Source of the DNA: Oculina patagonica
Taxonomy: Eukaryota
NCBI RefSeq assembly: GCF_052425735.1
Contig: NC_135761.1
Span: 17,484,001 to 17,548,000, forward strand
Direction: 5' to 3'
Length of the DNA: 64,000 nt
Below the pieces are notes generated by a model, which saw only the letters and a program-made list of their open reading frames with translations, was not told where the DNA came from and did no database searches. Position numbers and translations under genes: made by a program. Shown here one piece after another: positions 23,236 through 60,762 of this stretch. Each line of letters starts with the position of its first letter. The stretch's first letter is position 1.

Positions 23236-26200
23236 ATGTGTCCTTCGCTGTTGCTGTCTAGCTTCCTTGTATTGGCGGTCTTTACGGTGAGTTACAATAT
23301 ATCTAGATAATGGCACAAAAGACAATGCGTCTTTCGTAAACTGCTGCGGTATATCAACAGTCGCGTATCGCAGGAAAAGACAATCGGCCTCAATCAGTGG
23401 ATCAAAGACCGACATGAGTTTTTAAACAGTCTTTTCCAAGCATCTGCTCAAATTAAATCGAATCGAGGTAAGGAATGGCGTGTAAAAAAGATTATAAGCG
23501 CTTTGTTGTCGAGGATGTAAGAAGGTCTTAACGAACTCAAGCTCGCACAAATTGGACATTATAAGCGGTTCGTGCAGGTTGCTTCTCAGTTTGCGCTGAA
23601 AGAATATCCGCCGTCCACACATTGTTATGAAAAAGGCAAGCGATCAATCGTCAAAACAAGAAAGGGAGTATGTATAAAAGGGAAATTGTCCTAAGACTTC
23701 CCTCTTGAGTTGCCGTGTCAGTGGTGCTTACAGCTATTGTTCCTAAGTTTTATCAACATCGAGTTCACCTTTATAGCATAAATACACCGTCAAGCATACA
23801 GTTGAATATGCCTCAAAAGAAAGAAAACCTGGATCAGTATCATGAGCCTGCGAATATGACAGCCGCCTCTCGTCGCTTCTAGCTGCTAGGGCCGTTCGAA
23901 AGGGTTGCCATTCAAACTCACGAAGGTACACCCCAAGCGACCTAGATCGAAACGATGAGACGCGGTTGTATTCGCAGGCTGTTACAAGGGACAAAATGTT
24001 AAAATAATAGAACTGAGAATCAGTAAGTATTTGATATTGTCTTGTTATAGCACTAACTCACAAAGATAAACGACTGAAATCTATGACAATCGACGAGGAA
24101 GATTCCTGTATTTTTTAGACTAGTTGGTCTCAAAACTCAAAGAAGGTTAACTTTATTATTACTGTAAACTAAGTAGCTCTGTTTTGTATAAGCATTGATA
24201 GAGGGCTTCAGTTGTTTCTTTTACGATCACTTCATTTACATTGGCACGGATGTACAAACTAGTATGCTGTGATTTGTCACGCGAGGTACAGTCATTTCAC
24301 AAAAGAAAAACAAATTCAAATTCTGTACCAGGTGCCGCTGTCACGGGGGTCAGGAGGATTCTCCCAGGAAATCGAAAATTCCGTGCTGTGCACATTTTAC
24401 AATAGAAAAGTTTGCGCTTTTTACCTTTTCAATTCAGCCATTTTTATAACTCCTGACTAAAACGGTGGCTTGAAATCATCATCGGTACATTGAAAAAAAA
24501 AACACTTATTTACTTTCGGCAGATTATCACGAGCGCTTACAGATAAGTTACAACGTGTGAAAGATGAGTCAAGGCTCCTTTCGGGAATCTTTACAGTTCG
24601 GAACATTCGTAAAACACTGCAATGCCAATATGTTGGTTAAAAATGAGGTCAGTACTGAGCTGTAAGAGACAAAACAACAAACAAATCCTTTTTACGCTAT
24701 TGTTGTTTTTAGTTTCACTCAAAGTCTAGCCAACGTTTTTCCCGGCTTTCTTCTTGCTAACATCAGGACTTCGTATGCCCTTGTCTTAAACCTCTTAAAT
24801 GGTACTTAGTTCCGCGGATAAGAGGCGAAAGGCACGCATAGTCAATTTCACACGCAAAAGTTAGTAACTTTGAATCAACATTTTGCAAGAGCAACATTTT
24901 CCTTTTTGTTCGTTTCTCAGTGGTGGTAAAAAAAATGTTCCTTTCATATGTTAGGGCGTGTTCGTGCATGTGTGTGGAATTTGTTCCTCGTTCTTTTTTT
25001 AAAAATACATTAAAGACTGATGTAACTTCTGAAAGCTGATATGGGTACTAATTTCACTTAGTACTTTTAATTGCTTTTTGAAAAACGCAGACTTTATAGT
25101 GGATCTGTTGTCTAGGTAATTTGTTGCTATTGCAATGGTATGGAATATTGATAAAGGGAACACCAAATATGTATTGGAGTAGAGAATGAATTATTTTTTT
25201 TTATATTTTATAAAAAAAAAAAAAAAAAATTTTTTTTTTTTTATTAGTGATCCGACATTTGCGTGTTTGCTATAGCAAGGGCGATGACATCTTTGTGGTG
25301 AAATAAGCCACTTATTTCGGTGTTATAATCCTTGGTGTTATAAGCCATAATATCACCGTCCTGTGTCTATTAAAAACCATGCAGACTGAAAACGTGCGAC
25401 AGCTACAAGTGGCACAGCATTGTCTCCTCCTGGTGGTCTTTTTATTGATTAAGCTTTTCTCTTTTCAAATGAGCATCCGAACAATAGCAAAAAGGTGTAA
25501 ATTGCAGAGGAGTTTATTTTTGTGGCATCAGACAAAAAACTAACTTGCATGTCTGTGCCTTAATTACTTAATTAAGATCCGGTACAAAAGGATTAAGCTT
25601 AACATAAAGCTAAGAAAGTGATCAACAAAATTTCGTAGGAGAATCGAAATAAACTTTTCGACACACAGGTTAAAAGCCAGAGTAACTAAATACTTCTCTT
25701 GTAGCTTAAAGGACTTTCAACACAGAGAAGTTGTTAATATATATCACGCGCAATATTAACAGCTATTATTGGCTTGAGTGTACATGTGATTTTTTTTTAA
25801 ACTGCGATCATGCCCTTTTGAAAAAAACAATCGCCTGCGCTGATCAGAGGTTAATTTTGCTTCTGCTACATATTCCCTTCTACATGCCCCTCAACTCGAT
25901 GTCAACTTGTGTAAACGATCTATTGTTTTTGTCGCCGCTATATGTCGCAGCGACATGTCCCAGATTCGTAACCTCTCGTGTGTCGGCACCTTTAGATTGC
26001 GGTCGTGTTACTTAGCGTGTATGAAAGGGAAAGCGTATTCTCTTGGTGGGGAGGGAACACAAGTAGACCCATGCTCAGAATAATATTCAATTTCCTATTA
26101 GAGTCACAGAAACCATTCTATAGACCTCTTTTCCTTGGCACCACGCAATTTTCAGAAATGCTTCGTAGCATGGGTCGGGAAGCAGCTCTCGCAAGGACTT

Positions 26201-29200
26201 TCATGAACCAGAGAACAACAGAACAAACAACAGGAACAATGCTCATTGCCCCCCCCCCCCCCCAAAAAAAAAAAAAAAAAACAGTAGCAACTGCGACACT
26301 AGAAGACCGGTAGAATTAAAAGCTTAAGAGAGCTTTTAATCTCGCGGGTAGCTGCACCAGTTACATCGCTGTAACAATATTGCGAACAGTGTTGCACCGT
26401 ATACCCCGCGTCTTCAGCGTCCAAATTTCACATGTTGATATCTGTCTTGCCTCATTTTCTTGCCAGGTCAGTGTAGTGTGTGGTCCAGGCGGTCACGTGT
26501 CTCTTCTTTTTCGGTCCTTCTCAAACCCAAGTAGCCTGCTGCTCAGCGGCTACTGCTGTGACCCAGCATGCGCAGACTGTAACTATTACTTTGTGTTTTG
26601 CATCCGTGATAAACCGAGCTCCGCCAGCTGCTTGGTATCGGGTAAAACCAAGACATATCACAACTACAAGCACTTGGTGTTTTCGTCTGGCGATTCTCTT
26701 GGAAATGGCTGGAAAAATCCCTTGGAAGGAAGCTTTAGTTCTTGGAAGGTAAGGACTTTTTGCATCTTGTCTCTTCATAAGTGGTAGCAACTTGGTAGAT
26801 AAATTTGGTTGTTTAAAAATTACATTGTCATTAACTATTTAATGGTTAACAATGAGAGAACAACCCAATTTTTGTTGTTAAAATGTCAACTACGTATATC
26901 TGAGAGCGGGCAAGCGAGACAATAATTTACGTTTTTAAAAACTAAGCTTTAAGTTGAGAATTAATCGCCCCGGCCTAGCCTTATCATGCGCTGGTACCTA
27001 CATTGCCTGCCTCAAGGCCCTTCAACAAGGCTGTTGTATCAATCGCATTTCACAGTTATTTCCACAAGAACATAATTGTCTGGTAGATAATGTGGGCTCG
27101 AATAGTAATCATGAAGACAAACCAGCAAAATCAAAGGTCATCTTCGGGTTCTCAACTGAAAGCATGCAAGGGATTATCGCTAATTTGGAAAATCTTATAA
27201 ATTGTATGCGCTTAGTACTGCGAACTTTCCCATGAAGCAGTGCAACTTCCGGCATACACATGCATTTTTTAGAATGGTAGCAGGAACGTGTTACACGGCC
27301 AATCCCATACTTTCGAGGATTCACACCTACTCAAGCTGCTTGTCTTGTAATCCTAGTAACAATCTTCTGATAGTCACGAGCTATGACCTTTCGACTGACA
27401 CAAATGACTTCATATTATGTGCACAGGGTGTGCTTAGCTTTTCCATCGACATCTATGACTATGACTACTTTTCCGAAGCTGACGTCGTTGATCGCCTCAA
27501 TGTCAACAAACTTAACGTGACGCCGACCCCTTGGATGGAGTCAGTCAAATGGAAAACAATATCCCTCGGCGGGAGTGGTCATCCTTCCACCATGACGGTG
27601 AAATATAACATACAATGCAATGCAAATTATTATGGACCAAACTGCACGAAGTACTGTATCGCACATGATGACGATGTAGCTGGGCATTACACCTGTGATA
27701 AAGCCACTGGTCACAAGGTGTGTCGAGCTGGATGGCACGGTGCCAGTTGCAAGGTGTACTGTGTGCCTCATGATGATGACACACATGGGCATTACTCATG
27801 TGAGCCTGCCACTGGGAGAAAGATTTGTCTACAAGGTTGGTATGGATCTTCCTGTAAAGTGCACTGTGTCCCTAGGAATGACTCGCTGGCGGGTTATACT
27901 TGTGATTCCCAGGGGCAAAAAGTTTGCTTGCGGAATTGGTACGGTAAAGACAAGTGTGACGTTTATTGTAAACAGACCAACGATTCGAACGCTGCTTACA
28001 GTTGTGACTCGATTGGTAACAAAGTTTGTTTACAACGATGGTATGGTCCATTTTGTGATTGCACGCCCAGGAACGATTCTTCCATGGGTTACAAGTGTAA
28101 TATTACCACCGGTAAAAGAGAGTGTTTTAATGGATGGTTTGGTGGTGACTGTAATGTTCATTGTTTACCAAGGAATGATTCAGCAGGTCATTATACTTGC
28201 CACAGTGGTACTGGAGCTAAGGAATGTCTGCCGAACTGGTTTGGGGGAAACTGTACCGTGTACTGCAGGGCAAGGAATGATTCACTGGGTGGACAAGAGT
28301 GCACAATTAACGGCAGCCGACTTTGTGCCAGTAACTGGTATGGTCCAAGTTGCAGCGTGTACTGTTCCCCCAGAAACGACAAAGGCGGTCAGTACACTTG
28401 CAATCTAAAGACAGGACAAAAAATTTGTGAACAAGATTGGTACGGGGACAACTGTACCAAGTACTGTGTTCCCAAAGATAGTGATTTTTTTGGTCATTAC
28501 AATTGCAACAAGATCGATGGCAGAAAACAGTGCCATAGTGACTGGTATGGAAGCCACTGTACGTTCTTCTGTACCCCTCACAATGACACGCATGGACATT
28601 ACACGTGTGACGGAACAAATGGCACTAAGGTGTGTTTGGAAGATTGGTTTGGGACTGAGTGCAAAACGTATTGTAAAGCAATGAACAACTCTCAAGGGCA
28701 TTATTACTGTCGTCTCGAGGATGGAGCCAAGATATGCCACAAACATTGGTATGGTACTAACTGTTTAGTACACTGTATGGCTACAAATGACTCTAGGGGT
28801 CATTATGAGTGTGATCCTAGCGATGGTAGCAAGATATGCCATGCGGACTTTTACGGTCCGAACTGTTCGACACGCTGTATTCCAAAGCGAGGCAATGCAG
28901 ATGGACATTATGACTGCAACATCAAGGATGGCAGTAAGGCTTGCCTTCCGAACTGGTACGGACAAAATTGTAGCGTGTATTGTACAGCTAGGAATGACTC
29001 GACAGGACATTACGAGTGCAATGCAGTGGACGGGAGTTGGAGCTGTCTGGATGATTGGTACGGTCCTCACTGCTCCGTACAATGCTCGCCACAGAACACA
29101 TCCGCGGGTCATTACACATGTGACCTTAGAAACGGGAGCAGAATATGTCTTCCAGGCTGGACTGGGCAGTTCTGCGACAAGGGTGAGTTTTAAATTTGAA

Positions 29201-29837
29201 TTCTTTGTACTATTTTTTCTAAGTACTCATGTTGGTTCTACGACTCTGTAATGAACTTACCAAGAAAGTAATAAGTGGTAAAAGTAGCAAACAGGGGTAC
29301 ACAATGTAAGCCTCTACAGTAGTAGGATATCGTAGTTTTCTTATTTTACTTACCAATGCACTATTGTTTCTGTCTTGTTCCTTTTTGTAAATAATGTGTC
29401 CCAACTCCATTTGCCTTCTTTTAAAATCTGGTCTTCAGAAGTATACTTTTTTGTTTATTTTTCTGGGGCTTAAGTATGGTTTAGCGTAAATCCTTCTACT
29501 CCTAAGGTCAAGCTTAGTCATGATTAGAATGCCGTGGATAAGGCCAAGCAATAGAGCAATACTTTCAAGTGGCACTGGATGTTTCAGGATTTTTTTTTTC
29601 AGCAATGTTGAATTTTGGCAATCTTTGAATCAAATAAAGCGTTAAGGATGCTGGAGGAAAATCCATTTCGAAAATTTAAATATTTTTTCTAAGAGAAGAA
29701 AGAAAGGAGGAACAATACATCGCTTCTTTTTTTCCTTGCTGAAAACTTTCTTCCTCACTATGATTTTTCCAGAAACTGAGCCAGTGACAAAAGAGCCTAC
29801 AACCATCATTCGAACAACAACAACGACAAAAACACCC

Positions 29838-29869
<32 letters not shown>

Positions 29870-32800
29870 CAACAACAGCAACAACAACAACAAACCGAAC
29901 ATCCAACATCCGAAAAGTCCTCCTTGCCATGGAGCCACCCAGTTACTGAGCCAGTGACAAAGGAGCGTACTACCAACATTCGAACAACAACAACAAAAAC
30001 CAATTCCAGCATCCGAAGAGTCCACCTTGCCATGGACCCATCCAACCTTGCCTTCGCAGTATAAAAACGAAGAGAGGATTGTGATAAAGTTCTGGCACCA
30101 GTGGAATGGAGAAAAGGTGAGTTTGAAACAAGCACATTCATGGAGTTTTAAAAAGGCGTTTCTTTTAGTTCATTCCAAAGGTATAGAAAAGGGATGCATT
30201 ATTCCTACTGTAGGAATAGTGAAAGGAGTACTATTTTCTGTAGAAGGTACATGCACGAAAGGGTTACTTTTTCTGCCAAAAATGGTGGCGTCGAAAAACT
30301 AACCTCACATTTGTATTCATAGATAGATGTTTTGCAATTCAAGGGACATTTGTGGCCTCACGCATGAAGTTTTAGTTAAATTAAATGAATCTCCAGTGTT
30401 GTGTTTACATATTTGTTTCTCTTTCTTACAGTTTCTGAATGAGGCTCTCGACAATCTGAAATCTCTTTTCGCGAGTAAACTAAACAAGTTTTGTGAATCG
30501 GAAGCAAACTCTAAGTGTGGACTGCCAGATAGTTGGTTTCCTCCTAATAGGTTGGTGTAATCACTGTAAAATTCTCGAATTTTACTTCTATGCACTTCTT
30601 CTTTTTATAGTCACGGCTGAAAGGAGCATAAAAAGCGTTTAGGCCGTGTCCCAGTACAATTGTCAAAATAAATGCCTACAGGTATTCAAACAGCTTTAAC
30701 AAATGAACAACACAGTGCAGTGCAGCGCAGCGCGGTGAAGGGTTTTTCCATTAGGGTCTGATGTGTTGACTACATCTCAAATGGCCCGAAGTATCACTGG
30801 ATCGTATGGCAAATGAGCTCCTTACTGACAACTGACAGAGGGCCAGAATGTTAAAATGTCAACTGCCGAAGGGCTTGAAATTAGAACTGGCATTTAAACT
30901 GTCAGTCTCTCCTCTAAGTGCAACGTACAAACCAGAACGTTCCGACCTGGTGTCGTACAGGGCAGTGTTAATAACTGTGCTTCTAATTTCAAAATTCAAA
31001 TGCTCATCACTTACCTCAGTGGCATATATATCTTGTTTTTATGATATATTAAGGGACTGATCAAACACTTTTCTTCCTGTTTTTTTTTTAGATCACTCTT
31101 TGATTCTGAGAGTATTTTAGTGGAAGCGACTCAGCTAACAAACGAAACTCTAACAGTTGAAGTCGCCGTGAAACTTCCTCCAAGTGTCAAAGGTGAAGCA
31201 ATCACTGAAACATTTATCTGCGACATATTAGGTTTTAACTGCCTCCTTCTTGCTAACCCATAAAGTGATTACAGTGGAACCCCGATATAACGATATGTCA
31301 AGGGAGCAGTAAAAATATATCGTTATATCGAGGTATCGTTATATCGAAACTCCCGATATAACGATATGGCCGTAAAATAACCGAAAATATCGTTATATCG
31401 GGGTTAACTTAATCAAAGATACTGAAACTTAGAGAACTATTGAATGACAAGGAGGATAAAGAGGATAAAGTTGATAAAAAAGGCTTAGAACACAGTATCA
31501 TTTTCGTATATAATTGTACAAAGCGGTTGGCAGAAACATTAGAGATTACACGATTACTGTAAGGTTATTGTGTTCAATTCAATGTTTTGCTTAAATTGGT
31601 ACTGAGTACTGATAATATCGTTATATCGGGAAAGATTTTACGTTCGGTGCACTAAATTCTCATCGTTATATCGGGAATATCGTTATATCGAAGATCGTTA
31701 TATCGGGTTTCTGTCCCATACTCTTTACTGTAACTTTTGACGGGACAAAGAATATTCATCGTTATATCGGGAATATCGTTATATCGAGGATCGTTATATC
31801 GGGGTTCCACTGTAATTACGCGTCACATACATGCCATTTCAGGATCAGTTCCAGGCCGCACGCTGGAAGAGGCGGTAATGATCAACAAAGCCGTCATTAA
31901 AAATGTCACATCAGCGGAAATCAAAGAGGTCTACGTTGTTTCCCCGAGCTTGCCACCAGGCCTCTCTGGGTCAGCGGTGTCCACGAGGTCGTCAACGGTT
32001 TTGTCTTCCTCGCTATTTTACGTCATCGTCGCTGCGGGTTTCACTATTCTTCTTCTTGTTGTGATCATTGCGTCGTGGAGTTTCTTCAAGTACAGGTAAT
32101 TATGACTCTTATCTGGTGCAGTTTTGTTGCACATTGAGTCTAAATATTGTTCGGGCATGATAAGCTTGGTTATCAAGCAAAGCATGGGCTTGAAGTATCA
32201 ACAAGGTGTACCGCTGAGTGGGGCCTTGGTTCTTCCGCACAGATGGGAGAGTTCTTTGATGACTGTCAAAAATCGTTTAGCCCACAAAAAGCGAATTAAA
32301 CCAATCGAAACTCAAAGCAGACTAACCTACTATTCTTGCATGCAGTATAGATTTTTTTTTTTGGGGGGGGGGGTGGGGGAGGGGGGCTAAGTCACGCAAG
32401 CCGTAGTGAGTCAGACTGCATGAGGTATGCACCGTTGAAAATTGCCATCATTATCGTCGCGCCTCTCCGAGGTTTACCCATTCCCCCTGTGACTTGCGTC
32501 ATTCACCGGTACATTTTTCCGCAAAATTATTGGAACTGATTGTACGGATTTCGTGAGCTCATTTTAAAACGAGACGCCAAAACACACCCAAAACTGCCAT
32601 TGCAGATCTCCTCTGTTGTCTTAGTTGTTTACATGAAGTTTTTTATCGTTTCTCTATTCAGAAGAAGGTCTCGTGTTCGTGTCATCAAGGTAACGCCTGC
32701 ATGCAGAAAATGGTCATCGGGTGACAATATTGCTTTGGTATCAAGGGTTTCTAATGAAGACACAGAGGTAAGTCGTTATCAAGTATAAGTATTTTCAGCT

Positions 32801-33371
32801 GTTGAGGCTTTGATCAAAAACGTACCGTCAGTTACAATAGTGTCAGACATTGTAAACGGCTTCCGCATCTTTCAAAACATGCATGCCAAGCCGATATACT
32901 TGCTCTTTCTACTATTTTGACACTTCTATTTTTTCCATAAAAGGTTGAATTCTGGGGGAAAAATTGGCTTGCTGTATAGTACGCGGTCCGCGAGTTAATG
33001 AATGATTGGTGGGGGAGGAGGGGGGGGGGGGGGGGCGTTGCCAAAAACTTACAACAGTCGCTTTGAATACAACAAGAAGACTGGATCTGGTTCCACAAAC
33101 GACCTTTAGTGGTCGAATCGAAAAAAATATAAAAAGCATGATAGGTCACTTGCTATAAGAAAGAGCTGTTCACAGACTACGAATCAAAGTGCTGACTTGG
33201 CAAGATTAGCCAACATTGACATTATTCATCACATGAGTGTAATTTCTTTTCGGTATAGTACTGGCAGACAACCCATTCTTGGTTTCTTTGTTTTATCCTT
33301 AGGGTATCAAGATTTCTCGCGGCATCTCTCACTCCACGGTTCTTCCGTGTGGTGTAGTTTTACAGCCTTAA
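23236..33371 (+). CDS. Poly-DSL Delta-like type-I membrane protein E: signal peptide, MNNL/C2, 15 DSL repeats, Thr-rich stalk, SEA-like domain, TM, short tail; in-frame stop in the stalk exon as assembled
   Basis: Exons 23236-23286 (MCPSLLLSSFLVLAVFT), 26467-26748, 27427-29182, 29773-30116, 30432-30550, 31092-31192, 31843-32095 (TM LFYVIVAAGFTILLLVVIIASWSFF), 32662-32767 and 33303-33371. Splice phases are mutually consistent. Repeats match C-x3-(W/Y)(Y/F)G-x2-C-x3-C-xP(R)xD-x2-GHYxC-x3-G-x3. TGA at 29955-29957. Confidence 0.8.
29812..29893 (+). repeat. (ACA/ACC/AAC)n coding microsatellite in the stalk exon of gene E
   Basis: Direct reading of the sequence; lies in the first of two ~170-nt/~100-nt tandem units beginning actgagccagtgacaaa. 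Confidence 0.9.
31272..31812. mobile_element. Tc1/mariner-pogo type MITE
   Basis: TIR CAGTGGAACCCCGATATAACGA, TA TSD, many ATCGTTATATCG subterminal repeats. Confidence 0.88.
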
Positions 33372-51859: not shown

Positions 51860-54800
51860 TCATAAATCAAACACCACGTTCCAGTCACTGTCCAGGGTCA
51901 GTTGCCTGTTACCAGCTCCGCCACTCTTGCCTTTTTCTCGTGCTGCGGCAAACAAAGGGTTATTGTACATTACCAAATGATCATCTACTTGTCTTGAGCC
52001 ATCTTCAGTCCTGTACAAGAAAATGCACTCATTATTAATTGTGTTTAAAAAAGACACGAAGAAACACCCCCTTTGTTAACAAGCATTTTCGACGATATTA
52101 ACGGAGAAGAACGTGATTGGGAGTCAAGATGGTCAGAGCTCTCGCTGATTTTACCATCTTATGATGTTCTTTTCGTGGAGGGTAGCCATTATTAAGAGAT
52201 TAATCATTAAGCCTTTTCCATTCAAAAATGATCAAAACCGCGTTACAAGCCTAAAAAATGAAAAAAGTAAAAAAAAAAAACTCCCTCAAAACTAAATAAA
52301 ATCTGTATAAAAATATATCATCACATAGTTACATGTAAAAACAAGTATAAAAACATGCGTTTTAGCATCAATAACAAAACAAGTTTATTTTTTTGACCCG
52401 TCTCGTGTATTTTGCTGAACTGAGATTTCTTTTTTGGTATCCAAACACGGATCAATGTGATTTTGTAAAGCTTCTCTAAACAAATGTGTGGCAAATTAAG
52501 CAAACAAAGGGTTAAAGTCTTGCTTATGTGGAAAACAATAGTACACTTGCAATAACATTTGCTTACTTTTTAAAGTTTGCTATGTCTTTGTTCAAAGAAA
52601 ATTTGAAGGGATCCCGTTTCATCTCCCAGAACTGACTGGTTTCAACACTTCATCCTAAGGTTATTGTTGTTGTTGTTATGTCGTTATAAAGCGTAAACGC
52701 ACTCGCTCCATCCTCATTATAACCAACCCTTTCTCCCTTCCACTTTAGAAAAGCCTGATACTCAGGCGACGCCGTGAGGGGGTGGAAAACTGAAATAAAA
52801 GCGTCTGTGTCAGGCTTTTCTTTCCTTTCGCGCTTCTACCCTTTCTCTCCCCCCCCCCCCCCCTTAGAAAAGCCTGATACTCAGGCTATCCTCATTATGC
52901 CATTAGACGCATAAGACAATCGGAACGATCGGAACTTATAAATTTATCTGTGATTGTTTTTGCAGTACTTACCAAGAGACTTGCTGAACTTTGTAGAACA
53001 TGTCATTCATTTCGTATTGTGAGAGGATGTCAGCTGCTGGGTTAACTTTGCCGCCAACTGAATTCATCCTCTCCAATGAACACTTCTCTTTGTCATTGTG
53101 TTGTCTGGAGTAAGGAACTTTTTTCGTTCGGGGTCTACAACTGAGCGAAAGATTCAGATATTAAACAGTAGGTCTACAAATACTCTGTTAATGTTACGAG
53201 CGGCCCTTAATTCAGGGGGGACTAACGTATAAAAGTGACTTGGGTGATCGTCGAAAATCCCCTTTCTCGTTTCGTGGTACCGAATCTTTCTTGCAAATGG
53301 CCTGTATCGTTCCTTTTTTTTCAGTTTAACATCCTTAACTAGGTATTTTAATAACTTAAGCAGCGGAACCAAACCACCAATTTCTCAGTTCGGACACCCG
53401 TCGCTATTGTAAGAGAGTCCCCCTGGAATCCACCCCCCGTGAAAGTTTGAGTGCACACAAACTTTAGGGGCGAGTCACCCAAACTAACGTTTACTCTTTT
53501 ATGCATCACGCTAAATTAACACGCGCGCATCACGCTACGTACGCGTGACTGTGTAAACACGCGCACGCCTTTTCTATCTCTAACAGCTTACCTTATCAAA
53601 GCAATCATCGCTATAGCACTGAGGCACAACAGAAGCGCAAAGCCGCCAGTGATTAAACCGATACGCGTGTTTGTCATCCATCCTTCTTTTTCCGACTTTC
53701 TGCTTTCCTTTTCCACAGAAACGTTCCCTTCACTTGGTAACAAAGTAGAGATGCTGTATTCTGTGGTTTTCAGTTCGGTTGCAGGGACTGACGATGCTAC
53801 CGTAGTGGAGGCGACATATTCTGTGGTTTTAAATTCGGTTGAAGGGACTGACGATGGTGGAGTCGTTATTTCAGGTGGGCGAGTTGTAGTAATTCCTAAA
53901 CAATGAAAGAATACATGATACAAGAAATGTAAATGATAAGAACTGACGTTTCGGTGCATCTTGCGCCATTATCAAGCTTTTTTATCACTTATTATGTAAC
54001 TCTGATAATGGCGCAAGATGCAGCGAAAAGTCGGTTCTTATCATTTATATTTCTTGCATCATGTATTTCCAAATTATTTCTTATTAGACTAATGAAAGGA
54101 TATCTTAGTTTTTCGTTCAAGTTCTCCTTAATCCCCATTCTACACCATCCTTGTCCTTCTTCGGTTTATTGATAAATCTAAAGCATCGAATCTGTTTAGC
54201 GTGAAGACGCCAGCATTCCATGTGGAAATAGCCATTTCATTCATTTTTAAACAGCATTTTTAAAACACATGTTTGCCAGGGCTCAGCTTAGACATTCTAA
54301 AAGTCGTGCGCTTCTCGTTTCCGGTTTGGTGAGCTTGACTTAGCTTCGACTTGTAAGCAAATCTAAGGGCCCCTGTGCATGTTTGCTCGCGTTGGATTTG
54401 ACTCAAGGCTTCAACAAATCAAATATTTTAATAGAGAAAGTATCAAAAAAATTTGTGCGCCTTAGTGGTGTCAGTCTCTTGCAAAGCTTAATCGATGCCG
54501 TCATGGGAATGATTAAGTTGGGTCGTCCCACGAACTCAAGCGTTCTTCTGGATTCTTTCCCAGTACATGTCTACGGATCACCTTACAATTAGAACTGGGA
54601 ATCGAATAAACTGATATGAGGCCAATCAAATGCGATCTACTGAGTAGTACTTTGGTATATTCTATTTGTTTCTACAAAATGGATTGTGGGTCATAACAAC
54701 AAAATTAACTTACTCTGAAGGCACGCGTCTCCATGCCAGCCTTCAAGGCACAATCTATGGCCCGTTTCTTCATCACAAGTGTAATGTCCTTGACTGCTGT

Positions 54801-57800
54801 TTTGTGGTCTGCAAAATACCGTGCAGTTAGGTCCGTACCAATGCCTGTAACATAACCTGCTTCCATCTACGGAATTACAACTGTAGTGTCCGGTGGAATC
54901 ATCCCTAGGGATGCAGTACACGGAGCAGTTAGGGCCATACCAAGTTGGGTGACAAATCTTTGCGCCGTCCTCAAACCCACAATCGTAATGTCCTTTAGAG
55001 TCATTGTTGGGCACACAATGCGTTGAACAGTTGGAGCCGAACCAACTCTGGTGACATATCTTGCTACCATCACTAGAATCGCATTCATAATGTCCCCGAG
55101 AGTCATTTCTTGGTGCACAGTGAACCGTGCAGTTTGGCCCAAACCAGTCTTGATGACATATCTTGGTCCCGTCTTCGACAGCACAGTGGTAGTGCCCTTG
55201 TGAGTTGTTCGTTGCTTTGCAATACGTTTTGCACTCGGATCCAAACCAATTCTCCAAACAAACCTTGCTGCCGTTAACGTTATTACACTTGTAATGCCCG
55301 TGCGAGTCATTGTGTGGTTTACAGAAGACAGAGCACAGGATTCCATACCAGTTACTGTGACACTGTTTACTTCCATCGATCTTGTTGCAATTGTAATGAC
55401 CATAATAATTGCTGTCCTGAGGAACACAGTACGCTGTGCAGTTCTGCCCATAATAGTCTGGATTGCAAATCCTTTTTCCTGTCTGCGGATGGCAAGTGTA
55501 ATGACCAGCGTGGTCATCTCTTGGCGCGCAATAAACGGTGCAATTCGGTCCATACCAGTTGCGGGCGCACAATTTACTTCCATTTATCGTGCACTCGTGT
55601 TGACCAAGAGAATTATTCTTGGCCTTGCAGTACACGGTACAGTTTTCTCCAAACCAGTTGGGCAGACACTCCTTAGCTCCAGTGCCACTGTGGCAAGTGA
55701 AATGACCTGCGGAATCGTTCCTTGGTGAACAGGAAACATCGCAGCGATCACTGAACCATCCACTGAGACACTCTCTTTTACCGGTGGTAATATTACACTT
55801 GTAACCCATGGACGAATCATTCCTGGGCGTGCAATCGCAGGATGGACCGTACCAACCTTGCAAACATATTTTGTTTCCATCTGAGTCACAACTGTAACCA
55901 GCATTCGAATAATTGGTCGGTTTACAATAAACGTCGCACTTGTTTTTACCGTACCAACTCCGCAAACAAACTTTTTGCCCCTGGGAATCACAAGTGTAAC
56001 CCGCCAGCGAGTCATTCCTAGGGATACAATGCACTTTACAGGTAGATCCAAACCAACCTTGTAGACAAATCTTTCTCCCAGTGCCAGGCTCGCATGCGTA
56101 ATGCCCATGTGTGTCATCATCATGAGGCACACAGTACACCTTACAACTGGCACCGTGCCATCCAGTTCGACACACCTTGTGACCAGTGGCTTTTTCGCAC
56201 GTGTAATGACCAGCGTTGTCGTCATCGCGTGCTACACAGTACGTGGTGCAGCTGGGTCCATAATAATCACGATTACACTGAACCGAGTACTTCAATCTAG
56301 TAGTAGAGGGACTACTTCCTAGAGTAAGTTGCCACCATTTTGTTTGTGACGCCCATGATGCGGGGACGACGGAAACTTTCTGTTGATACTTGTCTATGAG
56401 GTCATCGGCAGACGGCCATGAGTCTTCGTCATAAGCTTTGATGCTCACTACGAACGCGCCCTAGGAAATGAGATGGCGATTATAAAATATAATTTTAAGA
56501 ATGATTGACATCTTAATTTCCCTAATATGAACACAATACAAGGTCAAGCGAGCCAATGGCTGCATTTCTATGTGCTCTAAATACAAATGGTTTAAAATGA
56601 AAGATTCTTAAAACAATAAACAAATCCATACTTAAAATCTATGACACCAAGTAATACCCGATAATTGTACCAGCTAGCTTCACAAAAGCAACGCAAAAAT
56701 AGTTTTAAAAATGGTTACATGCATCCAATTATCAAGAAAGACATTTTAGCTTTTTACACAACCGGCTTTCGTAGCGGTTTTCGTTTAACTGTGAGGAATA
56801 GTTGTGGGTTTACTTTGTACGTTGAAAAAACCTGCTTTGTCCCGGATGAAAGAAATATTTTTTTCATCAATCAATCAAGAACAAAATCAAATACAGTCGT
56901 GACTTGGCCCAAGTCACGAGGTTTGTTCGCACTTGGCTCCGGTACATGTAAATTCGAGTTCTGATTGGTTCATTGCGTTGTTTTCGTTTGCTTTGATTGG
57001 CTAGATAGATTACTTTACGTCATTACTCGGCTTACCGTCCATGAAGAGAAGGACCATACCAGAGGGTTTCTTCCACCACTATGAAAGTCTTCATTCTTTT
57101 TGAACACAATGTACTTGGTGTTATCGTAGGTCTTTGTCGTGGCAGATGCTACACAGGACCCCCCAGTAGTTTGTTTCAAACATATTTCCAAATAATAGTC
57201 ACAGCTCCTACACGGTGATTCGCAACAATTCCCGTTTAAGTCATTATTAGAAGGATTCGAGAAGCTCGTCAGAAGAACAGACAATTTTCCTCCAGGGCCG
57301 GCTACTGTGACTGGAACCTGAAGAAAGTAATAGTAGACAGGAAATTGATAAAAATGGTTTTCTTCTGGTTTACCGGCGCTGTCTTTATAGCATTAATTTG
57401 AAATGCTATACTGAATACTTTTAAGTCAGTCTGTCACCTATGATTCAATCAGTGAGTCAGTCAGATGTGGTATACGTCAAGGGCAACCGCTCACGCTATT
57501 TATTCCTTTACATGCAAACTGCTACTGAAAATTAAATGAAACCTCCTGAAAATGAAATGGCTTCCTTTTAATTTTTCTACTTTTGGTATCGACGACAACC
57601 GTTCTGATCAGAACCAAGGAGTTAAATGTAAATAGAAGTTCCCTGCAAATACATCCTGACAATCGTTAACTAGAATCTGTACATCTTTGGGCACTTGGTA
57701 ACACTTTGACCCGTCTACATCGCCCATGCGCAAGAAACTATGGACTGGTAATGTTTTTTGTCTTTGTAACTGAACGCCGTTAAAACAACAACATAGTTTA

Positions 57801-60762
57801 ATAGGATCGTGCCAGTTAGCATGTTTCATGATTAGCGAGAAGAAATTGAGTTTGAACAGGTGTTTTCTGGCATGTGTTTTTTTTTTCTTGGTATCAGTAA
57901 TTGGTGAAGACGTGCAGAAGTTAACAAAACATACACCTCCTAAAAAGACATTATGGCTATTTTCTCCTACGATACGTGCGAGACGGCATTCTATAGGGGG
58001 GCGTGTACCTCTTGTTAAAGTGTATCAAATGTGTGCGTAAGATCAGTCAAGTTAGAAGGCTACAGTTAAAATGATAAAAAAATGGTACTCTGAGCGCAAA
58101 ATCAGAAATAGGAGATGCAGGTCATCCATTTTTTACTACTTAGTTTCAACGTTGTTAGCTAAAACCGCGTTCAAGTTACCGTTGATCAAAATTATTATTT
58201 CGTCGTGATTTTTTAATACATTTATACGGACGTTTTCACAAGTCTCTGTTAGTTGTCTGACCCTCACGTTAGTAGATGAAACTCTAGGGCGTGATACTTT
58301 GAATGAAATGTATTGATCGTAGCAGTACAGTAGCAGTTTTTTATACTGTACAAGATGGTTCTTTAAAGGTCTTCTAACTTTGAGTCTGTAGATCGATGAA
58401 ACCATATGATAGTCACGTGTAACCATTCAAAGCTATTGAGCAATACTAAATTAAATTTGATTTTTTTAGACAAGGCACTCTTCAGGAGCCAACGGGTTAA
58501 AGTGATAGAAATAACTGATGTATGGTTATTTTTTTTTTTATTTTGATCCTTCTTGTGCCTGTCACTAAGCAAAACAAAGTCACACTCGAACCAGTTTGAG
58601 ATAATCTTCCGTTACTTCCCGATTAAAATTAATCTCTCAGAGGGGTTTATAAATGCTTCTACGGAAGTCTTTCTAAAAATAAACAAAAGTCGAAATTTTG
58701 TAGTTTTATCAACTGGTTACTAGTTTTTAATTTCCCGTTCTAGTATATAAAACAACAAAGAGGACCTTTATTGGTCTGGAGCTGTTAACGGCCCTTCAGT
58801 ACTTAGGCCACGTATCCCATAACACTTTTAGCGATTCACCTGTGATTATCAGTTTCTACGTTCACATGAGTTGTAAGCCTGAATTCATTTCGACAAAAAA
58901 TAAATGTTGATCTGTTTGACGAAAGTATCAAAGCAAGCGTGATGTTTCATAGTCACGAAACGTATCATACAGTGCGTGTGTAGTGTTTCGTGGATGTTGA
59001 AGCCAACGATTTAGTTATGGCGCCTCGCTGGCATGAACGTTCATAGCCGTGACAAATCGGTTAATCCTCCCTCTCAATCAATCTACACTCTTAGATTGAA
59101 AACACACGTGAACGGATCGTGACGAAACGCATTTTATCAACTACTGCATGAAACAAAATAAACAGAAGATTCATTGGTGTTTTGACTAAACTTCAATTTC
59201 CATTAAACATAAACAAACGGGTTTCTCGCTGCCGGCTTTAAGAAAAACGCTTGCCATAAAGACTGCATTAACTCAAGCTGAAAAAAAAATCACAAAAAAA
59301 TCACTAAGGCCTGGTTCTTTGTATTGTCTTTAAAAAAATAAATAAAATAAGATTTTCCTTGGATTTGAGCCGATTTGTGCCGTTTGTAAGCCTAAACCTG
59401 TCTGTGTTTAGAGTGTGTCATTTGGCCTCGCGCAACAGAATGACCTTTTTCATATCTTGAGTTTTGAGTGGCATATTTCTTTTGCACTTCTAAAAAAATT
59501 CAGTTCCAAGAAACCTCACTAGATCTGCACTTTTACTGAGTTTTCTGTAGCGTTATTAGGTTCCTTCTTTTCACCAAAATTAACAGGGACATAAACCTGA
59601 CTTGTTCCGCTTGCATCAGTGGACCGCGGAATAGCCAAGGCAAACAAATGCATGCTGTCTCATAATTGCACACGCCCCTTTCTTGAAGCAGCATAACCCA
59701 CCCGTTTCACCCAACTGTTTCACTCAAGACTGCCAAATAAACCGTTGAGAGAAACGAACCACAATTAGACGAGAAAATAAATGCCTTAGCTTGGTGGAAC
59801 ATCTCTTCACGGAGCACATGGTCACTGATGAACAAGAGTCCGGCCCTGGGCGATTCTACAGATAGTCGTACAATTATGATTAATTGAAAATCGATGCGTT
59901 GCCCGTGGGAAACATTTTTGTGGTGATTTTCTAAGTGATCAGACCGGAAACCAAACCATAAAACAAGATATCCGTCTTTACCGGCAGATTGGGTAAAGTT
60001 AATTATAGCGCCACTGTAAATCCCGTGTCCAAAACATCCTTATGTGGCACCGCTACTGTGTTTTGACACATCAGGCATCTTGCAACTTGCTTTTCACTTG
60101 CGGCAACTCGAACCGACGACTCGTTAAACAAAGAAAAGATAATGAAAAGGCCTTTTTATGACAAAATATGCCCTGATCACAAAACAGGAAAGTCACCGAA
60201 TACCCGCTTTAATTGTTAAAATGACGCTACCACACACACAGACTGAAATGTATCTGCACTAAGATTTTTGGATGTTTAGTGTTTTCAATAACAAAGGCGC
60301 TGGTTTGTTAATAACCATTTTTGGGCTTAACGAAACGATGTTTCTAAGGTTTTGCGACTTTTTGCGCTTGGAAAAGCCGAAAGATTCGTTTTTTTAAGGC
60401 AGAATAAATATAAACATACGCAGCGTACCGTACGTAAGTATAATTTTCTCATGGAATACTTCCTCTTCGAGATTTCTTATTTGAGTCATGTTTCAAGCTA
60501 GAAATATTTAATTTTTGCTATAGCTTTATAATTTTAAAGTAAGGATTTAAGACAGAGAGATAAAAAAAAACTTTTGTCCCGCGAGATCGAGAGTTACGCG
60601 TCAGGTAAACTTCGAATGATGCGCGCAAAATTTCCCCTTTCTTTGGACCCCCATATAATACAATAGTATTTCTCGCAAACCTACCTGAACAGTAACGAGC
60701 AAAGATAGAAGCAGAAGAAAACTAGCGGCATTTCGGGAAACGGAGAGTTTCATCCTAACCAT
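51860..60762 (-). CDS. Poly-DSL Delta-like type-I membrane protein H (signal peptide, MNNL/C2, 15 DSL repeats, Ser/Thr stalk, TM, ~105-aa tail), ~907 aa
   Basis: Exons 60762-60685 (MVRMKLSVSRNAASFLLLLSLLVTVQ), 57317-57036, 56460-54714, 53895-53592 (TM IGLITGGFALLLCLSAIAMIALI), 53134-52973 and 52010-51860; 2724 nt in frame. Confidence 0.87.
53910..54068. repeat. Long inverted repeat (~65-bp arms) of Penelope-pLTR-like sequence next to the acceptor of the gene H TM exon
   Basis: aatacatgatacaagaaatgtaaatgataagaactgacgtttcggtgcatcttgcgccattatca pairs with tgataatggcgcaagatgcagcgaaaagtcggttcttatcatttatatttcttgcatcatgtatt. Confidence 0.85.

Follow-up and report, generated by a model that had tools for sequence, protein, structure and literature searches.

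Can the DSL domain be strung into a chain in which neighbouring copies share part of their structure? It is the receptor-binding hallmark of all canonical Notch ligands and has so far been treated as a solitary six-cysteine domain of unclear origin. The question is raised by a gene on the minus strand of a 64,000-nucleotide (nt) stretch of the genome of the coral Oculina patagonica (NCBI RefSeq assembly GCF_052425735.1, contig NC_135761.1, positions 17,484,001 to 17,548,000 of the forward strand; hereafter the window, whose own numbering is used unless stated otherwise). One exon of this gene encodes a cysteine-rich array, and we consider it probable that this array is a chain of DSL domains with shared hairpins, carried by an expressed type I membrane glycoprotein of the Delta/Serrate/Jagged superfamily.

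Translation of the minus-strand open reading frame (ORF) 54691-56448 gave a sequence with 62 cysteines, in which the spacing 9/4/12-13/9 recurs strictly. It resolves into 15 periods of 32-35 amino acids (aa) with four cysteines each, followed by a closing C-x3-WHG-x2-C (15x4+2 = 62). This agrees with the initial annotation of the locus, which had described a period of about 33-35 aa with four cysteines; the range given there for the array (54714-56290) was accurate as well, and the array proper lies just inside it (Table 1). The consensus of the period, C-x3-W-[YF]-G-x2-C-x3-C-x-P-x-[ND]-D-S-x-G-H-Y-x-C-x3-4-G-x-K-x, matches, column by column, residues 1-33 of the Jagged1 and DLL1 DSL domains. 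The repeating unit can thus be described as a 34-residue module of two loops (motifs in Table 1): hairpin A would be the equivalent of both the C1-C2 and the C5-C6 loop of a DSL domain, and loop B that of the C3-C4 loop. Read as an A-B-A-B...-A string, every A-B-A segment would make up a complete DSL domain, with 15 domains sharing 14 hairpins.

The Pfam DSL family (PF01414) was found on the exon in 15 stretches with an E-value of 1.4e-121. Its model comprises 46 positions and six cysteines, close to the standalone domain of about 45 aa and six cysteines assumed at the outset, and has a gathering score of 24.2 bits. Fifteen overlapping segments of 42-45 aa, each consisting of a hairpin, a loop and the next hairpin, were scanned separately. 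All of them matched the profile over positions 1-42/43 of 46 with 36-55 bits, and the six-cysteine DSL spacing 9/4/12-13/9/9 is present in every one. As controls, a 34-aa piece of hairpin plus loop matched profile positions 1-29 only, a piece of loop plus hairpin positions 12-43 only, and a 44-aa segment taken out of register was broken into two partial DSL matches. Since each A-B-A segment is an end-to-end DSL match, each of the 14 internal hairpins is used twice, closing one DSL domain and opening the next, exactly as had been suggested for the motif C-x3-WxG-x2-C. A six-frame DSL scan of the whole genome likewise returned overlapping matches in this exon, in steps of about 100 nt.

At the DNA level, Tandem Repeats Finder reported no tandem repeat in the array. 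The units are only 25-64% identical in pairwise protein comparisons, and the repeat is therefore detectable in protein only. No Pfam EGF family exceeded its cut-off on the single segments, where EGF_laminin reached 17.5-17.8 bits (cut-off 21) and EGF_Teneurin also stayed below its threshold. On the whole exon, EGF_TEN was the only EGF family above cut-off (80 bits), and the same repeats match DSL far better.

The array is part of a gene with six exons (Table 1). Spliced contigs of runs X1 and X2 bound exon 3 by the junctions 57036/56460 and 54714/53895, which corroborates that the 15 units sit in a single exon of 1.75 kb. All five introns are of the GT-AG type and the coding frame of 2730 nt is intact. 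Each of the five junctions was found in intron-less contigs of run X1; X2, which comes from another study, shows the two downstream ones as well. The RNA label of these two runs is a software guess, and no run is recorded as RNA. Runs X10 and X11 contain the locus with introns at 1-5% divergence and are DNA of related corals. The gene is transcribed and spliced.

Table 1. Coordinates of the array gene, of parts of its array and of the paralogous array, in the numbering of the window
Feature	Position	Strand	Evidence or remark
Exon 1, coding part (start codon, signal peptide)	60685-60762	-	loose end of X1 contig matches 60690-60719; GT donor after 60685; hydrophobic N-terminus
Exon 2, N-terminal part of C2/MNNL	57036-57317	-	Pfam MNNL; spliced contig to exon 3; GT-AG introns
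Exon 3 (1747 nt), C-terminal third of C2 and entire array	54714-56460	-	spliced contigs; GT-AG introns; frame open throughout
Exon 4, Ser/Thr/Pro-rich stalk and transmembrane helix (helix 53594-53662)	53592-53895	-	spliced contigs, translation; no Pfam domain
Exon 5, cytoplasmic tail	52973-53140	-	spliced contigs of X1 and X2
Exon 6, tail end with YNNPLF (last residue ends 51950), then stop	51860-52010	-	translation, coordinates
Array	54721-56277	-	15 periods and closing hairpin, 15 overlapping DSL domains; segmentation, Pfam, models
Hairpin A			C-x3-[WY][YFH]G-x2-C; opens each period
Loop B			C-x-P-x-[ND]-D-x2-GHY-x-C; second half of each period
Unit 1	56173-56277	-	sole unit collinear with canonical-ligand DSL; YYG opening; no N-glycosylation sequon
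Unit 9	55363-55467	-	second YYG-type opening, like the canonical first hairpin; loop B without sequon
Closing hairpin CLEGWHGDAC	54721-54750	-	exon 3 ends 7 nt beyond
Paralogous 15-unit array, gene 1 (P0001)	27616-29073	+	one exon; used for unit-by-unit comparison

The arrangement of the disulfides offers a simple explanation for how such a chain could be assembled. In the Jagged-1 crystal, the DSL disulfides pair neighbouring cysteines (1-2, 3-4, 5-6), and the loops C1-C2 and C5-C6 can be superimposed (PMC3415683, after Cordle et al. 2008). By homology, the same consecutive pairing is expected for the array. Disulfides of this kind connect consecutive cysteines and never pass from one module into the next, which allows hairpins and loops to be strung together. 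AlphaFold2 modelled units 11-15 together with the closing hairpin from an alignment of 81 rows (A1), with a mean predicted local distance difference test score (pLDDT) of 97.1 and a predicted template modelling score (pTM) of 0.75. The strands 17-19, 22-26 and 33-35 of this five-unit model recur exactly every 34 residues; in the AlphaFold2 models five short strands repeat per 34 residues, and the secondary structure does not alternate. The last residue of the third strand (33-35) is the first cysteine of the following hairpin, and this strand is thus predicted to span the unit boundary, where it would run beside the hairpin of loop B. A model of the whole array (529 aa, pLDDT 85.8) displayed the same periodicity in all 15 units. 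The predicted structure is an extended, locally stiff beta-hairpin rod. The continuous, disulfide-stapled rod of the initial annotation is upheld with respect to its uniform 34-residue fold, whereas stiffness is predicted locally only and the disulfides are placed by homology. The Jagged1 rod measures 120 Å for four modules (PMC3415683); scaled from this value, the array would reach about 40 nm by our own estimate.

The comparison with the DSL structures of Jagged1 and the DLL proteins, which had been proposed as a check, yielded the DSL-EGF rods of DLL4, Jagged1 and Jagged2 as top matches of the 34-residue-periodic model. In the PDB, the best Foldseek hits were Jagged1 DSL-EGF1-3, DLL4, DLL1, Serrate and Jagged2 (E 1e-8 to 1e-6). 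VIA-align placed model residues 1-115 on residues 175-284 of DLL4 (4xlw_B, Z 9.1) and 1-169 on residues 187-335 of Jagged1 (2vj2_A, Z 8.4), which indicates that successive periods follow the ligand rod from the first DSL cysteine onward. The high global root-mean-square deviation (rmsd; 7-10 Å in VIA-align) is as expected if the curvature differs. Against the Swiss-Prot models, SCARF2 and SCARF1 ranked equal to DLL4 and JAG1 (E about 2e-9; SCARF1 with a TM score of 0.41 and an rmsd of 7.7), and a SCARF1 crystal fragment (8hna) was also among the structural matches. Matches to TNFR were weak (Z 2-2.7), and a shape search of the ESM Atlas returned Delta-like and SCARF2 clusters and nothing further.

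Outside the array, the product of 909 aa consists of a signal peptide, a C2/MNNL domain, a mucin-like, Ser/Thr/Pro-rich stalk, a transmembrane helix and a cytoplasmic tail (about 105 aa). MNNL (PF07657) was detected on exon 2 with 23.7 bits (cut-off 22.5), directly before the DSL array. Using phmmer, the end of C2 together with unit 1 was found to be collinear with the C2-DSL part of DLL1 (4xbm), JAG1 (5uk5) and the structures 7alk and 7alt (Delta, Serrate). At its other end, the array passes directly into the stalk and the transmembrane helix. Tandem EGF repeats, including the first two of the DOS type, were not found in the protein, and the Pfam scan gave no match to an EMI domain.

The individual units differ in features that may be relevant for binding. 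The Jagged1 positions F199/R201/R203/D205/F207 read Y/V/R/D/A in unit 1, and the conserved Notch-binding face is thus not found there. The equivalents of F207 and R201 are also lost in unit 1 of the Nematostella ortholog described below. None of the units has Phe at the F207 position, and Tyr is present there in unit 9 only. The aromatic pair before GHY in unit 9 is YY in this protein, FF in the paralog and WF in Desmophyllum and Nematostella, and it sits at the positions of F206/F207 of Jagged1. Unit 9 also coincides with the sole low-confidence stretch of the whole-array model (a pLDDT dip at model residues 290-340) and may represent an internal binding site or a hinge. N-glycosylation sequons amount to 20 in units 3-15 and are missing from units 1-2; most of them are of the types N-D-S (loop B) and N-C-[ST] (end of hairpin A).

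In the cytoplasmic tail, a block ending in YNNPLF ([FY]xNPx[FY] type) is encoded at 51950-52010 and 52973-52980 on the minus strand. Nematostella, Actinostola and other corals have almost the same block, and NPL[YF] variants follow the transmembrane helix in octocoral and other membrane forms. The motif was found by pattern among proteins already retrieved; a homology search with the tail of Nematostella P0004 (region 625-781) returned the query itself only. We take [FY]xNPx[FY] in this position to be a signal of the PTB/endocytosis type. Judged by the motif, the protein thus has the cytoplasmic NPxY-type element by which Draper, CED-1 and MEGF10 are characterised.

The window contains a second array gene (gene 1, 24564-33368), to which the protein ACROYT_G012787 (P0001) maps at 99-100% identity. 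The two arrays are 27 kb apart. For 14 of the 15 units, the closest counterpart in the other array occupies the equivalent position, with 58-93% identity on the diagonal versus 31-58% off it. Odd unit lengths are moreover common to Nematostella P0004: a unit 3 of 33 aa, a hairpin of 11 residues in unit 4 and a unit 5 of 32 aa with a C-D-C link. Positional orthology and shared odd lengths together indicate that the array is old and has not been homogenised. The ratio of nonsynonymous to synonymous substitutions (dN/dS) relative to the paralog is 0.18 over the exon, a value by which the gene is judged to be under purifying selection. Units 2-3 deviate from the rest of the exon: between 55969-56172 (minus strand) and 27721-27924 (plus strand), the DNA identity is 95% and the synonymous divergence about 0.10, compared with 0.5 to saturation elsewhere. 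This low synonymous divergence points to a gene-conversion tract between the two oppositely oriented genes; stronger constraint on units 2-3 as the cause of the high identity is ruled out by the drop to 0.10. The two membrane forms share the rod and not the membrane-proximal parts. The C-terminal half of gene 1 (29185-33368, plus strand; P0001 residues ~708-958) contains a non-repetitive juxtamembrane region of about 200 aa between array and transmembrane helix, and its tail is devoid of the NPxF block. The cluster of poly-DSL genes reaches past the window on both sides (contig positions 17467075-17467707 and 17559883-17560137), with one gene of at least six overlapping DSL matches in steps of about 100 nt lying ~17 kb upstream and another ~12 kb downstream. 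Besides this cluster, the 529-Mb assembly has four further DSL loci with one match each, presumably canonical ligands.

An exhaustive HMMER search yielded 1444 related representatives, of which 58 had E<=1e-30. Shared-hairpin chains of up to 15 units were present in 102 of the 183 relatives retrieved. Where the source is named, the relatives come from hexacorals, sea anemones, octocorals and one scyphozoan, with more distant ones in ctenophores, an annelid (DSL domains interspersed with EGFs) and one protist transcriptome. Several anthozoan genomes contain unit-for-unit counterparts. NCBI names given to the relatives include 'draper' and 'MEGF11'.

Nematostella P0004 corresponds to jgi|Nemve1|212534 (PMC2770060, Additional file 7). 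It is identified as the ortholog by the order of its array (units 1, 2, 5 and 6 match their coral counterparts best in both directions), the odd unit lengths and the YNNPLF block. P0004 is likewise a shared-hairpin chain, with 12 units compared with 15 in the coral. Gazave et al. (2009; PMC2770060) listed the Nematostella poly-DSL gene as a partial model 'composed only of DSL domains' and did not exclude misassembly; their account of the gene contains neither the overlap of a 34-aa, four-cysteine module nor the C2 head, the transmembrane helix or the tail.

Two long alternative-frame ORFs of 238 and 213 aa (54867-55583 and 55584-56225, minus strand) lie inside the array exon; rather than being genes, they most likely reflect the repetitive codon composition. 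In the apparent ortholog of Desmophyllum pertusum (P0003, OS493_010111), two stretches are out-of-frame translations of DSL units and match these two ORFs, which indicates a frameshift in the assembly or in the gene model rather than a different protein.

The ctenophore proteins P0030 (Mnemiopsis leidyi) and P0083 (Pleurobrachia bachei) resemble the coral protein in having many DSL units per polypeptide and the same A and B loops. In contrast to the coral array, they consist mostly of complete six-cysteine DSL domains arranged head to tail and repeating about every 42 aa, and the hairpin is usually unshared, so that two hairpins follow each other at the junction with a 2-residue linker. This contrast was drawn by direct reading of the sequences, as the pattern used for unshared double-hairpin junctions under-counts ctenophore proteins with their shorter B loops. 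According to a 2025 preprint (10.1101/2025.09.30.679519), Mnemiopsis is without an identified Notch ligand, and the ctenophore DSL-array proteins may be relevant candidates for this role.

How does the coral protein compare with the canonical ligands of the Delta/Serrate/Jagged type (JAG1 2VJ2/4CC0, DLL4 4XLW, DLL1 4XBM)? The C2/MNNL domain directly before a DSL domain, the type I membrane topology with an elongated, rod-like ectodomain, the DSL spacing and the YYG/GHY/GWxG motifs are common to both. The coral protein differs in having 15 overlapping DSL domains instead of one, no EGF repeats including EGF1-2 of the DOS type, no F207 in unit 1, a sequon-dense array and an NPxF-type tail motif. 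Disulfide-closed loops strung into continuous rods are otherwise known from the cysteine-rich domains of TNFR (A1/B2 modules), the furin-like regions of EGFR and the insulin receptor, and laminin LE arrays. The principle is the same, a 'domain' boundary being a matter of register, whereas sequence families and disulfide topologies are unrelated.

Within the shared-hairpin reading, a rod of roughly 40 nm would take the place of the canonical EGF stalk and hold the C2-DSL head far from the membrane. With about 20 N-glycan sites in units 3-15 and bare units 1-2, the sequons suggest a glycan-coated spacer. The rod would present the C2-DSL head, and perhaps unit 9 too, on an endocytosed receptor-like protein, and the [FY]xNPx[FY] motif of the tail would couple this protein to PTB-adaptor or clathrin endocytosis. 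Binding of the head to Notch is possible, with the balance tilting slightly to the other side.

Several observations weigh against this reading. Jagged-1 needs EGF1-2 of the DOS type for full binding (PMC2725086), and these are absent in the coral protein. Retention of the Notch face in unit 1 comprises R203, D205 and an aromatic residue at F199 only, with Ala as the equivalent of F207. The pTM of the whole-array model is 0.41 and its pLDDT falls below 70 around units 9-10, where a hinge is possible. In global superpositions, the models fit the solved rods loosely (TM 0.3-0.4, rmsd 7-12 Å). The alignment used for folding includes shifted-register segments of the same proteins and AlphaFold was trained on DSL/EGF structures, so the confidence values are perhaps inflated. 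Cysteines are nearly invariant in A1, and the four isolated substitutions in 80 sequences are too few for a paired-loss signal. Stiffness is accordingly claimed for the local scale, as the models do not support long-range rigidity; a rod rigid over its full length was dropped at a pTM of 0.41.

Could the array instead be a rod of the SCARF/MEGF10/Draper/PEAR1 type, made of truncated EGF-like repeats that merely resemble DSL? SCARF1/2, MEGF10/11, Draper and PEAR1 are single-pass receptors with a comparable predicted rod, as seen in the ties of SCARF1/2 with DLL4/JAG1 and in the 8hna match. The tails of Draper and MEGF10 carry an NPxY-type motif similar to that of the coral protein, and the NCBI names of relatives as well as the 80 bits of EGF_TEN on the whole exon fit the same idea. 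However, these receptors have laminin/EGF-type repeats of 6-8 cysteines with interleaved disulfides and an EMI or other N-terminal domain in place of C2, and the Pfam families of their rods were not found in the coral protein. Its period has four cysteines, not six or eight, all segments are DSL from end to end with EGF_laminin and EGF_Teneurin below their cut-offs, and C2/MNNL and unit 1 are collinear as in the solved ligands, without EMI. As a statement on descent this alternative is unlikely, and overall we rate it as very improbable; in its mode of action, the protein may nevertheless resemble these receptors (see the bolder proposal below). An alternation of discrete DSL and EGF or laminin-EGF modules, named in the initial annotation as the outcome that would contradict a continuous chain, finds some backing in phmmer, which puts units 2-3 on EGF1-2 of DLL1 and JAG1, and in the structural aligners, which map successive periods to DSL, EGF1, EGF2 and EGF3 of Jagged1. 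Such modules would need 12 cysteines per pair instead of eight. The same four-cysteine spacing occurs 15 times, the predicted secondary structure shows no alternation, and every single segment matches DSL while none exceeds an EGF cut-off. The uniform period excludes this arrangement, and hardly any likelihood is left for it.

An artefact of assembly or annotation, or a decaying pseudogene, was considered in view of the possible misassembly of the Nematostella genes (PMC2770060), the out-of-frame stretches of Desmophyllum P0003 and the guessed RNA label of X1 and X2. The intact frame with its five GT-AG introns, the junctions seen in X1 (all) and X2 (two), the dN/dS of 0.18 and the unit-for-unit orthologs in several anthozoan genomes speak against it, and we give this possibility practically no credence. 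The remaining alternative concerns function: the protein might act as a true Notch ligand, either trans-activating or cis-inhibiting, in which C2 and unit 1 bind EGF11-12 of Notch and the array is a stalk only. Notch activation requires ligand endocytosis, and the tail motif is of an endocytic type. The C2-DSL head is collinear with solved ligands, unit 1 has kept R203, D205 and the aromatic residue at F199, and units 1-2 are free of sequons. The DSL ligands of Caenorhabditis elegans act without EGFs of the DOS type. One EGF is present in C. elegans DSL-1 (PMC3415683). On the other side stand the loss of the F207 and R201 equivalents in unit 1 of both coral and Nematostella, the missing EGF1-2, and some four separate loci with a single DSL each, from which canonical ligands can come; a recent study in Nematostella counts four ligands, none of which can be matched to the poly-DSL gene (10.1101/2024.10.29.620801). 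Taken together, a role as a genuine Notch ligand appears rather doubtful.

The initial annotation had also interpreted the rod as a repeat scaffold derived from the internal symmetry of DSL. The symmetry is documented (PMC3415683), whereas there are two possible directions of derivation, and that from DSL is one of them: conversely, the 34-aa module may be the primary unit, with the canonical DSL domain corresponding to 1.5 copies of it. A bolder proposal, which we hold to be improbable, regards the poly-DSL proteins as cnidarian endocytic recognition receptors and not as Notch ligands. They would resemble SCARF, Draper and MEGF10, with a lipid-binding C2 head on a glycan-coated rod of about 40 nm and a tail that connects to PTB adaptors. 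As a corollary, the 34-aa module would be the primary unit of folding and duplication, and the DSL domain of all animal Notch ligands would amount to 1.5 copies.

The poly-DSL family has been known since 2009 as an unexplained curiosity. In the literature searched, we found no description of the shared-hairpin overlap, that is, of a 34-aa, four-cysteine module in which any A-B-A segment is a DSL domain, and no complete gene model with C2 head, stalk, transmembrane helix and conserved tail, no evidence of transcription and no unit-for-unit conservation. For this ortholog group, the doubt raised in 2009 about the reality of cnidarian poly-DSL genes is answered. DSL domains can be concatenated via a shared terminal hairpin, and conserved, expressed arrays of 12-15 units without EGFs occur across Anthozoa. 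Treating DSL as 1.5 copies of the two-loop module is relevant to the 'truncated tandem EGF' idea put forward by Cordle et al., and the module may interest protein engineers as a small, disulfide-stapled rod of tunable length. For corals and sea anemones, the family provides a candidate set of non-canonical Notch-pathway or recognition proteins.

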